Sequence record: PV740454.1
Length of the DNA: 64,000 bases
Direction: 5' to 3' (one strand)
Below are positions 53,030 to 58,250 of this stretch, in pieces (the stretch's first letter is position 1; each line of letters begins with the position of its first letter). Below the pieces are notes generated by a model, which searched no databases, was not told the origin of the DNA, and saw only the letters and a list, made by a program, of their open reading frames with translations. Made by a program: the position numbers and the translations under genes.

Positions 53030-53962
53030 ATGAAAAGCACAATGTTTTTGAACAACATCACTGTTATCGATCACGCATGGGTAGATGATGTTGGTGAAAT
53101 TAATGGTAATAGCTACAATCTTTGTGTAGAAATTACAGGCGAAGTCGATGAAACTGAACAAGTTGTCATCGACTTTAGTGGTTGCAAGAAGGCAATCAAA
53201 CAACTTGTAGACGAGTCGAAATTCGCTCTAGACCATCGACTAGTCATTGTTGACGGGTTCAGCGACGCTGTTCTGTCACTCGTTGAAGATCGTGATCGCA
53301 TTCAAATCAATACGCCAGTTTTTCACGCTGTATCAACAGTAGATGATTGGTATCAAGTCATCACACCAAGCGAATTAATTGAAGCAGATTTCAAAATCCC
53401 AAGCGATTCTCTGTACATGTCTTACGTTACTGAGTATCTTGAAGATATGCTTCTTTCTCAACTAAAAGAACAAGGCTATCCCGTTACACATGTTCTCGTA
53501 GAGCTATCAGAGAAGTTTGACTTGCCTTCTTGGGCTAACAGTCACGTTGAATTCAATTACGCTCACGGGCTGCGTTCAAGTACTTCATACGGCTGTCAGA
53601 ATATCGCGCATGGTCATCGTTCATTCATTGCAGTAGATCAACACTTGAATAGCAACGGTCGCAAGGTACTGAAGCGAATTGCAAAAGAAATGAGCGGCTA
53701 TCTAGCATGGTCAGACAACATTCGCAAAGAAGATGAAGTATCGTATCAGTCACAGCGCGGGAATTTCTATTTACGACATGAGAACATCAAAGTCATCCCG
53801 ACTGAAACGACTGTTGAGAATCTAGCAAGCTATATTGCATCAACATACGAAGAAGATTTTCAGCGTATGGGTGTTCAGCGAGTTTGGGTTTCTGAAGGTC
53901 TTTCGAAAGGGGCGGTTGTTGATATCAAGTTAAACAAAGCACTTTTAGGTAGAAATGCATGA
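53030..53962 (+). CDS. queD: Tandem T-fold 6-carboxytetrahydropterin synthase (QueD2-like)
   Basis: VVIDFSGCKKAIK...LDHRL in domain 1; HGL...CQNIAHGH and PTETTVENLA in domain 2. Confidence 0.8.
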   Translation: MKSTMFLNNITVIDHAWVDDVGEINGNSYNLCVEITGEVDETEQVVIDFSGCKKAIKQLVDESKFALDHRLVIVDGFSDAVLSLVEDRDRIQINTPVFHAVSTVDDWYQVITPSELIEADFKIPSDSLYMSYVTEYLEDMLLSQLKEQGYPVTHVLVELSEKFDLPSWANSHVEFNYAHGLRSSTSYGCQNIAHGHRSFIAVDQHLNSNGRKVLKRIAKEMSGYLAWSDNIRKEDEVSYQSQRGNFYLRHENIKVIPTETTVENLASYIASTYEEDFQRMGVQRVWVSEGLSKGAVVDIKLNKALLGRNA

Positions 53963-54639
53963 ATAGCGTACAAGATAAATCAGTTCTAATGGGTGATGAA
54001 TTACTTTTCAGTGAAAGCGAATGGGTTTCATTCGATACGATGAACACTGAAAAGAAAATTCTATCAAACCCAATATTCGACGAAGGTCTGAACAGAATTA
54101 TCAAGCAGTACACTCCAAAAACAGACACAGCGTTTATTTCGCTGTGTACTACTACTCGACCATATGAAAATAGTCGCAAGTGGAAAACGTTCATGGAAAC
54201 GTTTGGCAGTAGTGCTGACTTGATTGTTATTTCGAACGGCGGGGTAATCCCACAGAAGTTTTGGCACAGTTATCCGTATCTGAACTACGACGGTGACCCA
54301 AAAGTCAATCCACAAACTGAACTTTATTGTGAAATCTGCGAAGAGCGTGTTTATCGTTTCTTTAGTCAGGTGAAGTTCAAAAACATCGTCGCGAACTTTA
54401 AGCACGTACAACGCAACACTGAAGCAATCAAGAGCGCGTTGAAGCGACTTAAAGACGACGGTCACATTGAAAACTATGTTGTTCTACCAACTGTTGAGCA
54501 GTATGAAGAATTGCAGTCTCGTGGGTTCCCGAAAGGGAAAGTTTTCCCAGATGTCGATGATAAGATACTTGAACACTTGCGTTCGGCAGTACATTCGTAC
54601 TCGCCACCGAAAGAAAATAGCTTAGCTAACTTCTTTTAG
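53959..54639 (+). CDS. ArcS / DUF5591-like protein
   Basis: FISLCTTTRPYENSRKW resembles the ArcS LPCSxxKPYSxS motif; VISNGGVIP...YPYLNYD; sits inside the que cluster. Confidence 0.6.
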   Translation: MNSVQDKSVLMGDELLFSESEWVSFDTMNTEKKILSNPIFDEGLNRIIKQYTPKTDTAFISLCTTTRPYENSRKWKTFMETFGSSADLIVISNGGVIPQKFWHSYPYLNYDGDPKVNPQTELYCEICEERVYRFFSQVKFKNIVANFKHVQRNTEAIKSALKRLKDDGHIENYVVLPTVEQYEELQSRGFPKGKVFPDVDDKILEHLRSAVHSYSPPKENSLANFF

Positions 54640-54695
54640 TGTTTAAATACAACTCTCATCGTGTATAATACATTCTCAACAAGTGAGGAAATAGA

Positions 54696-55370
54696 ATGGC
54701 ATTTAATAAAGAGAAATGCGACGCTGAACTAGGTCGCAAAATTGAAGAACATCTTCGTGAAATCGGCATGAACACACCAATGCGTGAAGATAACGGTATC
54801 ACTGATGATGTGAAAATTCAATACATCGAATCGTCTTTCACTGACATCATGAATGTGTTGGGTTTAGATTTATCTGACGATTCGCTTGTTGACACGCCAC
54901 GTCGTGTAGCAAAAATGCTAGTTAAAGAGACAATGTGGGGTCTGAAGCCAGAGAACTTCCCTAAGTGTACTGCAATCGACAATAAGATGAACTACGATGA
55001 GATTGTATGCGAAACTGGCATTACTGTCATGTCGCAGTGTGAACATCACTTTGTGACAATCGATGGTAAAGCAACAGTTGCTTACATCCCTAACAAGAAA
55101 GTTCTTGGCTTGTCTAAGATGAATCGCATTGTTGAGTACTTCAGTCGTCGCCCTCAAGTGCAAGAGCGTTTAACGATTCAAATCGCTGAAGCTCTAAAGC
55201 TTATCTTAGAAACTGACAACGTAGCAGTAGTTCTAGACTGTGAGCACTATTGTGTTAAGTCTCGTGGCGTTGAAGATCACACATCAAGCACGGTGACAAG
55301 TAGCTTGTCTGGTGTGTTTCGAACAAAGCCCGAAGCACGTGCTGAGTTCATGGCACTAGCAAGAAAGTAA
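54696..55370 (+). CDS. folE: GTP cyclohydrolase I
   Basis: DTPRRVAKM; SQCEHHFV; GLSKMNRIV..FSRRPQVQERLT; HYCVKSRGV. Confidence 0.97.
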   Translation: MAFNKEKCDAELGRKIEEHLREIGMNTPMREDNGITDDVKIQYIESSFTDIMNVLGLDLSDDSLVDTPRRVAKMLVKETMWGLKPENFPKCTAIDNKMNYDEIVCETGITVMSQCEHHFVTIDGKATVAYIPNKKVLGLSKMNRIVEYFSRRPQVQERLTIQIAEALKLILETDNVAVVLDCEHYCVKSRGVEDHTSSTVTSSLSGVFRTKPEARAEFMALARK

Positions 55371-56850: not shown

Positions 56851-56925
56851 GTTGTTTAATATATCATGAAATTGGCTATAATGAGTGTTCAGGATGAGCA
56901 CTCAATAGCTTCGAGAGGTTATAAA

Positions 56926-57642
56926 ATGAAAGTAGTTTCTGTTTTAAGCGGTGGTCTTGACAGTACAATTCTCACATACAAACTAGTAAATGATTTCGGC
57001 GCAGACAATGTGTTTGCTCTATCGTTCTACTACGGTCAAAAACAGTCAATTGAGCTAGAAAAAGCTAAGTTGACTTGTCAAAAGCTCGGGATTGAGCATC
57101 GTCTAATCGACATTTCATTCTTAGGTGAAGTTGTAGCGCCAGTCTGTGCGAATATCGCAGGCTCAGAAGTTGCAATGCCGACTATTCAAGACGTTCTAGG
57201 TGACCCTCAGCCGCCAACTGAAGTTCCATATCGTAACATGCTATTGAATACAATTGCGTTCTCGTTTGCTCAAGCAAATGGTTGCTCAGCGGTATATACT
57301 GGCATTCAAGTTCATGACGCATACGGTTACTGGGACTGCACGCAAGATTTTCTTGATGGTATGAATCGAATCTCATCGTTAAATCGTCAGCATGAAATCT
57401 CACTGCACGCGCCATTTGCTCAGATGTCAAAGGCAGATGAAATCGAACTTGGTCTTCTGCTAGGTGTTCCGTTCGAAGATAGTCTAACTTGTTACGACCC
57501 GAACGAAGCTGGTGAAAGCTGTGGCGTGTGCCCATCATGTGCTGAACGCATTATGAACTTCGGTAAAGTAGGCATCAAAGATTCTGCGCCATATTCGAAA
57601 CATATCCCATGGGAACAAGTATTCGCTAAGGCAGGTCATTAA
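56926..57642 (+). CDS. queC: 7-cyano-7-deazaguanine synthase
   Basis: VLSGGLDST; YGQK; VPYRNML; YWDC; TCY; CGVCPSCAER. Confidence 0.95.
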   Translation: MKVVSVLSGGLDSTILTYKLVNDFGADNVFALSFYYGQKQSIELEKAKLTCQKLGIEHRLIDISFLGEVVAPVCANIAGSEVAMPTIQDVLGDPQPPTEVPYRNMLLNTIAFSFAQANGCSAVYTGIQVHDAYGYWDCTQDFLDGMNRISSLNRQHEISLHAPFAQMSKADEIELGLLLGVPFEDSLTCYDPNEAGESCGVCPSCAERIMNFGKVGIKDSAPYSKHIPWEQVFAKAGH

Positions 57643-58250
57643 TGTGCGGTTTATTTGCTGCTAGAAGCAAGCAAGAGCTTATTGAATTATCAAAAAGCAA
57701 TCTACATCGTGGTTCGCGTACTCACTCTGTGAGTACGTTTAAAAACGGTCATGTGTCAGTGCATAAATTCACTGGTGCATTCGATCCAGTTAATGTTCCT
57801 GACAGTGCAGATTTCTATATCTGTCACGTACAAGCACCAACTGGAACTAGTGCGCAAGCACACCCAGCTATTGTAACAGTCGAAGAGAACGGTCAGTTAC
57901 ACGACTCACACGTGTGGCATAATGGTATTCTCAAAGATCATTACATGAAAAAGCAGACTCAAGATTGGGATACTGCACACATTGCTGAAGCTATTTGCTA
58001 TGGCAAATTGAATGAGCTTGACGGTACATTCGCGTGTTTTCACTTCATCAACGGCAATTTACGTGTGTTTCGTAATGAAATCAGCCCGTTGTTCATGAAC
58101 GAAGACGGTACAGCATTCAGTAGCACTAAGACGATTCTAACACCGTATCATGTTGATGCGAATAAAGTGTTTAATATCGACTTACGAACATTTAAACTAT
58201 CGGTAGTGAGTGAGTTCAAGACACTCGAAAATCCATATTTCTTTTTGTAA
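57642..58250 (+). CDS. Class II (Ntn) glutamine amidotransferase
   Basis: MCGLF (Cys2 nucleophile); HRG; CHVQAPT; HP; WHNGIL; GTFA; TAATG coupling to queC. Confidence 0.85.
   Translation: MCGLFAARSKQELIELSKSNLHRGSRTHSVSTFKNGHVSVHKFTGAFDPVNVPDSADFYICHVQAPTGTSAQAHPAIVTVEENGQLHDSHVWHNGILKDHYMKKQTQDWDTAHIAEAICYGKLNELDGTFACFHFINGNLRVFRNEISPLFMNEDGTAFSSTKTILTPYHVDANKVFNIDLRTFKLSVVSEFKTLENPYFFL

Follow-up and report, generated by a model that had tools for sequence, protein, structure and literature searches.

A putative stand-alone glutamine amidotransferase paired with QueC in the nt-1-type 7-deazaguanine cluster of Vibrio phage CZ01

Background

The DpdA2 subfamily of DNA 7-deazaguanine transglycosylases was founded on YP_008125322 of Vibrio phage nt-1 (Hutinet et al. 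2019, PMC6884629). We have analysed a stretch of 64,000 nucleotides from Vibrio phage CZ01 (PV740454, host Vibrio natriegens), positions 183139-247138 of the phage, which we will call the window, and this work focuses on six genes at 53030-58250 within it. They are almost certainly a DpdA2-type 7-deazaguanine DNA-modification cluster of the nt-1 lineage. The cluster as a whole is already known, and CZ01 is the second isolate with the nt-1 system. One part of it is apparently unreported: the last gene, encoding a 202-amino-acid protein that we will call GAT, for glutamine amidotransferase. The best explanation overall, and in our opinion a probable one, is an nt-1-type cluster in which GAT serves as the glutaminase of QueC.

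The supplementary table for nt-1 lists DpdA2, FolE, QueD (YP_008125319), QueE (YP_008125479), QueC and ArcS, and the 202-amino-acid gene after queC is missing from the published gene tables (PMC6884629). Virion DNA of nt-1 contains 232 dPreQ0, 72 dADG and 44 dG+ per 10^6 nucleotides, which amounts to some 0.17% of G (PMC6884629); CZ01 is known from its genes alone. Simple arithmetic from the published level gives about 170 sites per nt-1 genome for the known deazaguanines together. The nt-1 dpdA2 gene alone, expressed in E. coli, yields 926-1607 dPreQ0 per 10^6 nucleotides in plasmid DNA (PMC10516641), and dpdA2 with arcS yields dG+ at 4-7 per 10^6 nucleotides (Hutinet, Cui et al. 2023, PMC10516641). 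The same paper renamed the nt-1 ArcS (VPFG_00169) ArcS2. When ArcS2 is added to DpdA2, dPreQ0 drops from 926-1607 to 0-11 per 10^6 nucleotides and the lost preQ0 is not accounted for (PMC10516641, Table 3). This reconstitution contained neither the phage QueC nor GAT (PMC10516641).

Two other described systems are close enough to matter. The KVP40/VH7D-type cluster shares a backbone of two-module QueD, FolE, DpdA2, QueC and a GAT 90-91% identical to that of CZ01, but it has a bimodular QueF between DpdA2 and QueC, DpdM in some phages and no ArcS2, and its products are dPreQ1 and mdPreQ1 rather than the dPreQ0 and dG+ of nt-1. The Gat-QueC of Enterobacteria phage 9g and of Crenarchaeota also joins a class II glutamine amidotransferase (GATase) to a QueC PP-loop enzyme, and the Pfam GATase families are the same. 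There the two are a single polypeptide with Gat at the N-terminus, whereas CZ01 has two genes, queC and then GAT.

It is important to realize that ammonia is already part of the QueC reaction, since QueC takes ammonia as its nitrogen donor and uses two ATP. Among other PP-loop enzymes, AsnB, NAD synthetase and archaeal GMP synthase have a glutaminase as well, either fused or encoded separately. In asparagine synthetase B and archaeal GMP synthase the ammonia from the glutaminase goes to a domain of the QueC superfamily, an ATP-pyrophosphatase, as we propose for QueC and GAT. The likeness is not complete in either case. AsnB has its GATase fused at the N-terminus, unlike CZ01. Archaeal GMP synthase has its GATase encoded separately and downstream, but that partner is a class I (triad) enzyme, PF00117, whereas GAT of CZ01 appears to be of the Ntn (N-terminal nucleophile) type.

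Results and discussion

The nt-1 system in CZ01

The cluster consists of six contiguous open reading frames, all on the plus strand:

53030..53962, plus strand: two-module T-fold QueD (6-carboxytetrahydropterin synthase), 310 amino acids; PF01242 (PTPS), E 9.9e-12, in two stretches.
53959..54639, plus strand: ArcS2, a stand-alone C1 (DUF5591) core, 226 amino acids; PF17884; its start overlaps the QueD stop.
54696..55370, plus strand: FolE, GTP cyclohydrolase I, 224 amino acids; PF01227, E 8e-60; NCBIfam NF006824, 302.9 bits against a cutoff of 202.
55456..56850, plus strand: DpdA2, DNA 7-deazaguanine transglycosylase with a predicted tRNA-guanine transglycosylase (TGT) fold, 464 amino acids from a TTG start; by identity to nt-1 and by AlphaFold and Foldseek.
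56926..57642, plus strand: QueC, preQ0 synthase, 238 amino acids, of the GAT-linked subfamily; TIGR00364, 166.9 bits against a cutoff of 150.3.
57642..58250, plus strand: GAT, predicted stand-alone class II (Ntn) amidotransferase, 202 amino acids; by fold and family profile; its ATG overlaps the QueC stop (TAATG).

The family matches across the cluster are strong and are not due to chance. An initial annotation, made from the letters of the stretch, had read the same contiguous set here, a tandem queD, an ArcS-like gene, folE, a TGT-fold gene, queC and an Ntn amidotransferase, and all six are there as it described them.

Over the cluster the DNA matches Vibrio phage CZ01 at 100% identity and Vibrio phage nt-1 at 97.2%. 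For the six proteins, taken in gene order, the identities to nt-1 are 97.7, 99.1, 100, 99.8, 97.9 and 99.5%. The same six genes stand in the same order in nt-1, QueE is distant in both genomes, and we find no substantive sequence difference between the two clusters, so the CZ01 cluster confirms the stability of the published gene set. The initial annotation had proposed a 7-deazaguanine DNA-modification cluster with an unusual set of enzymes. That proposal is borne out by nt-1, 97% identical, with its dPreQ0, dADG and dG+ in virion DNA and its DpdA2 and ArcS2 tested in E. coli. Its main inference had thus already been tested in a near-identical phage, a published status that it did not recognise.

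The annotation had also set out the usual FolE-QueD-QueE-QueC route to preQ0. FolE, QueD and QueC are indeed in the cluster; QueE is neither in the cluster nor in the window, which it did not notice. The queE gene lies at 71485-72366 of CZ01, with 89.4% nucleotide identity to that of nt-1, which is likewise far from the cluster (YP_008125479, at 70296-71171). CZ01 therefore encodes FolE, QueD, QueE and QueC, the complete preQ0 pathway. The defence-system models of PADLOC give a partial match to QueC in this region and nothing else.

GAT as a class II amidotransferase

We are confident, on the basis of its predicted fold, that the 202-amino-acid protein is a class II (Ntn) glutamine amidotransferase. 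Its AlphaFold model has a predicted local distance difference test score (pLDDT) of 92.4, and Foldseek matches it to PurF, GlmS/GFAT and EgtC with E values from 2.5e-8 to 1e-5 and template modelling scores of 0.6-0.69 on the query. The family profile aligns from residue 1 with the glutaminase domains found in GlmS and PurF. Homologs at 32-39% identity carry PF13522 and PF13537, and the GAT of Pseudomonas phage pf16 passes the gathering scores of both; among 25 aligned family members PF13537 is found in 14 and PF13522 in 11.

The protein begins Met-Cys-Gly, with the cysteine directly after the initiator methionine. Residues were counted over 147 family representatives with 29-67% identity. Invariant or nearly so are Cys2, Arg23-Gly24, His62, Thr67, His74-Pro75, His93-Asn94-Gly95 and Trp109-Asp110. 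A C-terminal tail of GAT, Asn-Pro-Tyr-Phe-Phe, is conserved as well. Cys2 is present in 145 of the 147, the other two having gaps at this position, and every one of 80 viral loci has the Met-Cys start. Asn94-Gly95 and Asp110 occur in all 147 and align to the HNG and DTE positions of GlmS. By this alignment the conserved residues are the predicted nucleophile, oxyanion hole and alpha-amino-binding Asp of the class II amidotransferases. The model, the family profile and the conserved residues agree, and the Ntn call of the initial annotation stands.

Most records label GAT a 'hypothetical protein'. The literature outside subscription-only papers yielded no account of a stand-alone GATase that partners the phage QueC.

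Pairing of GAT with QueC

The GAT family comprises 320 clusters (50% identity) at E<=1e-30. Of the 150 listed members with the best scores, almost every one is a separate protein of about 200-225 amino acids, and there are no QueC-sized fusions among them. What these genes share is their neighbour. In 80 of 80 IMG/VR loci queC lies upstream of GAT on the same strand. The GAT ATG falls from -16 to +11 nucleotides from the QueC stop in 75 of the 80, and 32 have the one-base overlap seen in the window. The five loci outside that spacing carry an insertion between queC and GAT. A GIY-YIG/NUMOD3 homing endonuclease gene sits there in one contig (L071:5335-5994), and an acyl-carrier-protein-like gene (PF00550) in two others (L070:3808-4775 and L079:1739-2062); the L070 insertion also includes a class II aldolase. 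Beyond these loci the pairing recurs in three metagenome contigs, in pf16 and in the jumbo Vibrio phage 2.275.O, which is unrelated.

The enzyme that tailors preQ0 is much less constant. Within the stretch fetched around each locus, 43 of the 80 GAT loci show QueF, three show ArcS2 and 34 show neither, ten of these last having DpdA2 in view. We also scanned one genome each of 185,579 species with two conserved peptide patterns of GAT. There were five matches, all on contigs of metagenome-assembled genomes; four of these carry further phage-type que genes and the fifth holds a GAT fragment only. The GAT family looks virus-restricted.

In the QueC proteins the Ser8-Gly-Gly-x-Asp-Ser loop and the zinc cysteines (Cys189, Cys199, Cys202 and Cys205) are conserved. 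In a tree, 41 non-redundant GAT-linked QueCs, the window QueC among them, cluster together on a long stem with 100/100 support, apart from seven plain phage QueCs and three fused Gat-QueC domains. This tree holds few plain QueCs and no bacterial ones, and all of its linked loci were found through GAT. The ArcS2-bearing loci fall in different sub-groups, which suggests that ArcS2 and QueF have been swapped on a constant QueC-GAT backbone. Few genes of the pathway are linked as tightly as GAT, whose family is large and seems confined to viruses, and the GAT-linked QueCs are a diagnostic subfamily that could improve annotation.

The role of GAT

We lean slightly towards the view that GAT is the ammonia supplier, the glutaminase subunit, of QueC. 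In the pathway as we picture it, FolE, the two-module QueD, QueE from elsewhere in the genome and QueC would convert GTP to the free base preQ0. Cys2 of GAT would hydrolyse glutamine and hand the ammonia to QueC, which would use it to make first the amide and then the nitrile from 7-carboxy-7-deazaguanine. DpdA2 would then swap a small fraction of the guanines in DNA for preQ0, and ArcS2 would turn some of this preQ0 into the amidine base G+. The DpdA2 and ArcS2 steps have been shown for the near-identical nt-1 proteins, and the other steps, GAT apart, are established pathway knowledge. Whether QueC and the 202-amino-acid protein together make up an undescribed two-subunit, glutamine-dependent nitrile (preQ0) synthase, seemingly found only in viruses and widespread in marine T4-like and jumbo phages, we regard as an evenly balanced question.

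Several lines of argument lead us here. The pairing with QueC is strict, is translationally coupled and is independent of the later fate of preQ0; the catalytic apparatus of GAT appears intact; and QueC needs ammonia, with PP-loop glutaminases as precedents. A further line comes from phi-Grn1 and phi-ST2. They carry QueC, a GAT 91% identical to ours and QueF, and their DNA contains dPreQ1 and mdPreQ1 with zero dG+, at modification levels similarly low to those of nt-1. Phages with QueC, GAT and QueF that make no dG+ argue for reading GAT as a glutaminase of QueC and not as a second tailoring enzyme. An Ntn enzyme requires a free N-terminal cysteine as residue 1. Given this requirement and the order queC then GAT, a fusion would be impossible, so the pair would have to stay two genes, which fits the overlap of stop and start.

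This is where we part from the initial annotation, which took GAT and the ArcS-like protein for two independent amine-adding enzymes and expected from them a second or an unusual product. GAT goes with QueC in 80 of 80 loci whatever the tailoring enzyme, its relatives beside QueC and QueF occur in phages that make no dG+, and QueC itself needs ammonia. The preQ0 lost when ArcS2 is co-expressed, the absence of a RaSEA-type match in the one gene checked (see below), the omission of the phage QueC and GAT from the reconstitution and the low total of known deazaguanines in nt-1 together do leave some room for an unusual product; nothing in the sequence supports it directly. A bolder version of our reading would have the main DNA product of the ArcS2 lineage lie outside the liquid chromatography-mass spectrometry panels used, for example as a preQ0-lysine-type adduct. 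That would explain both the lost preQ0 in the ArcS2 co-expression and the very low virion totals.

There are real points on the other side. The nt-1 reconstitution succeeded without the phage QueC and GAT. The window GAT has no Pfam match even at E<=1 and reaches no GATase threshold. Gln64 (codon at 57831-57833) is found in 145 of the 147 GATs, where GlmS and PurF (Arg73) and the 9g Gat have Arg. This Arg of GlmS and PurF binds the alpha-carboxylate of glutamine, and with Gln64 in its place the nitrogen donor or its binding mode may differ. Of 336 phage records with QueC only 51 have GAT, and many phages thus manage with plain QueC, so GAT is not required for QueC chemistry. Part of the synteny among related T4-like phages reflects common descent. 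A contig of a metagenome-assembled genome labelled Flavobacterium (L097:1-1834) has the order GAT-QueF-DpdA2-QueE-QueD-FolE with no QueC in the 1.2 kb upstream. On that contig a kinase-like gene lies upstream of GAT and then the contig ends; it is the only exception to the pairing that we saw.

Three of the other explanations change what GAT does. One is that QueC and GAT are a split Gat-QueC that takes 7-carboxy-7-deazaguanine through preQ0 to G+, which would give CZ01 and nt-1 two G+ synthases. Gat of 9g and the GAT family both belong to the class II GATases, type PF13537/PF13522, the 9g Gat-QueC with DpdA yields dG+ at a high level (9-18% of G), and the ten viral loci with DpdA2 and QueC-GAT but no QueF or ArcS2 in view would suit such an enzyme. 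We consider it quite unlikely all the same. QueF, an enzyme that requires free preQ0, is encoded in most QueC-GAT loci as well; phi-Grn1 and phi-ST2 have the pair and no dG+ at all; and nt-1 DNA carries mainly dPreQ0, not dG+. The proteins themselves also stand apart. The QueC part of 9g shares 25% identity with that of CZ01, and the two belong to separate, strongly supported groups of the tree; hhalign gives the two Gat parts a probability of 4%, so that no kinship beyond the fold can be detected, with the canonical Arg in 9g and Gln in the CZ01-type family. A different proposal, unlikely as a replacement for the QueC role but possible as an extra one in the ArcS2 lineage, is that GAT also or mainly supplies ArcS2 with ammonia to add onto the preQ0 nitrile. 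ArcS of M. jannaschii is reported to use NH4+, Asn or Gln directly, and ArcS2 lies immediately upstream of QueC-GAT in three metagenomic loci. Such a supply would explain why ArcS2 and DpdA2 without GAT gave so little dG+ in E. coli (only 4-7 per 10^6 nucleotides) while dPreQ0 fell to 0-11. ArcS2 is not the general partner, however, since 77 of the 80 GAT loci show none in the stretch fetched, and nt-1 virions, with all the genes present, reach only 44 dG+ per 10^6 nucleotides. We find it improbable that the 202-amino-acid protein is an Ntn hydrolase of some non-glutamine substrate, such as an amide or adduct of a deazaguanine intermediate. The replacement of Arg by Gln64 would fit such a change, and EgtC, a stand-alone Ntn hydrolase whose substrate is not glutamine, is among the fold matches. 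Yet Asp110, Asn94-Gly95 and Arg23-Gly24 are all retained, and PurF and GlmS, which match best by fold, are genuine amidotransferases.

The remaining explanation concerns the target. The cluster might mainly supply preQ0-type bases to tRNA or something else, with the rare modification of DNA as a by-product. The low level in nt-1, about 170 sites per genome, and the similarly low levels in phi-Grn1 and phi-ST2 are what one would expect of a by-product. We give this little credence, because DpdA2 modifies plasmid DNA in E. coli and has a model that most resembles the DNA insertase DpdA, because ARAGORN finds no tRNA genes in the 64-kb window, and because phages of the nt-1 kind have no queA, queG or queH genes (Hutinet 2019, PMC6884629).

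If GAT does serve QueC, then QueC-GAT is the natural split counterpart of Gat-QueC, one in which the attached GATase serves the formation of preQ0 itself and not of the amidine. The pair is a natural experiment on the function of a QueC-attached glutaminase. GAT was absent from both reconstitution experiments on these phages; if it raises the supply of preQ0, its omission may partly explain the low heterologous modification.

DpdA2

DpdA2 of CZ01 is identical in 463 of 464 residues (99.8%) to YP_008125322 of nt-1, the protein that puts preQ0 into plasmid DNA in E. coli. Its relation to the TGT enzymes is much harder to see. The 464 residues have no Pfam match, phmmer and two profile searches of the PDB found no significant kinship to TGT, Pfam applied to 15 family members gave one weak match to PF01702 that is not significant, and hhalign against the 9g DpdA and against 120 DpdA1 sequences was not significant either. 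Since none of the sequence methods reaches significance, the TGT-fold assignment is settled by structure comparison alone. The AlphaFold model (pLDDT 86.4) has as its best PDB match in Foldseek the bacterial DNA preQ0 insertase DpdA (7ui4, E 2.4e-7), followed by mouse TGT and human TGT. The initial annotation had asked whether this protein groups with the bacterial tRNA TGTs; as modelled, it is closest in structure to the DNA insertase, then to eukaryotic TGTs, and not to the bacterial tRNA enzymes.

Asp76-Ser-Gly-Gly-Leu-Gln and Ser264-x-Asp266 are invariant in 47 homologs, and Asp112 and Ser267 nearly so. Asp76 (DSGGLQ) and Asp266 (YDSS) align with the DSGAF and CDSSS blocks of DpdA1 in an alignment that is itself non-significant. 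In the GenBank entry of CZ01, DpdA2 begins with the ATG at 55474. Beginning instead with the TTG at 55456, as nt-1 does, adds six residues. The N-terminus Met-x-x-Glu-Tyr-Val-x-Ser is conserved in the family, so we believe the TTG to be the start and the GenBank protein to be truncated.

QueD and ArcS2

CZ01 QueD is 97.7% identical to YP_008125319 of nt-1, and the 310-amino-acid protein scores under the cutoffs of the NCBIfam QueD models. In E. coli QueD the catalytic residue is Cys27 and the zinc ligands are His31 and His33; the N-terminal module of the CZ01 protein carries Val21, Asn25 and Asn27 at these positions, while its C-terminal module retains His179, Cys189 and His194-Gly-His196. Judged by these residues, the C-terminal module is likely the catalytic one and the N-terminal module is likely degenerate.

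ArcS2 scores 43.5 bits with PF17884 (DUF5591) against a cutoff of 26, the ArcS model of NCBIfam also matches, and comparison with PDB 2q07 (AF0587) gives E 4.7e-8. It is 99.1% identical to VPFG_00169 of nt-1, which yielded dG+ together with DpdA2. With the archaeal archaeosine synthase ArcS-RaSEA it shares the DUF5591 C1 catalytic core, but it has no TGT-like N domain, no C2 and no PUA domain, and it works in a DNA pathway. Where the archaeal enzymes have Pro-Cys-x3-Lys-Pro-Tyr-x2-Ser-x2-His (PC-X3-KPY-X2-S-X2-H), ArcS2 departs from this motif with Leu-Cys-x3-Arg-Pro-Tyr-x2-Ser-x2-Trp (LC-TTT-RPY-EN-S-RK-W). The nt-1 motif has been described as 'slightly degenerated' (PMC10516641). We found the same variant in a metagenomic ArcS2 that is 38% identical, which makes it a conserved variant rather than decay.

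Most archaeal ArcS enzymes add lysine to preQ0, and their radical S-adenosylmethionine (SAM) partner RaSEA is required to finish G+. We considered VPFG_00320 of nt-1, the sole other annotated radical SAM gene checked there, as such a partner for ArcS2 and rejected it, as it is a twitch-domain radical SAM protein with no RaSEA-type match. Its gene (L095:1465-2520) adjoins a weakly glycosyltransferase-like gene. Nor does the corresponding position in Vibrio phage 1.081.O hold a second ArcS2. The gene for a 229-amino-acid protein between QueD and FolE in that phage (L008:1162-1851) occupies the ArcS2 slot of nt-1 and CZ01, but it is unrelated to ArcS2. It belongs to no Pfam family, and phage 1.081.O also has QueF.

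Transcription and surroundings

Three further features lie between or before the genes:

52977..53004, plus strand: promoter-like site (TTTAAA, 16 nucleotides, TATAAT) before the QueD-ArcS2 pair; consensus scan, 10 of 12 matches, a pattern only.
54642..54669, plus strand: promoter-like site (TTTAAA, 16 nucleotides, TATAAT) before folE; a pattern match only.
55374..55398, plus strand: terminator-like hairpin with an 11-pair stem and a T run directly 3' of folE; a pattern only.

With promoter-like sites before queD and folE and a hairpin after folE, the six genes seem to be divided among several short transcription units rather than joined in one operon, as far as such pattern matches indicate.

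According to the CZ01 annotation the remainder of the window holds ordinary T4-like genes of replication, recombination and nucleotide metabolism. A DNA methyltransferase gene (CZ01_420) at 63432-64000 crosses both the end of the window and the origin of the record, and it would be a second, unrelated DNA-modification function close to the cluster. Upstream of the cluster two adjacent paralogues of unassigned function, at 50359-51279 and 51282-52118, both belong to phrog_6387. At the matching position nt-1 has one copy of this gene and the KVP40-type phage PG216 has two.

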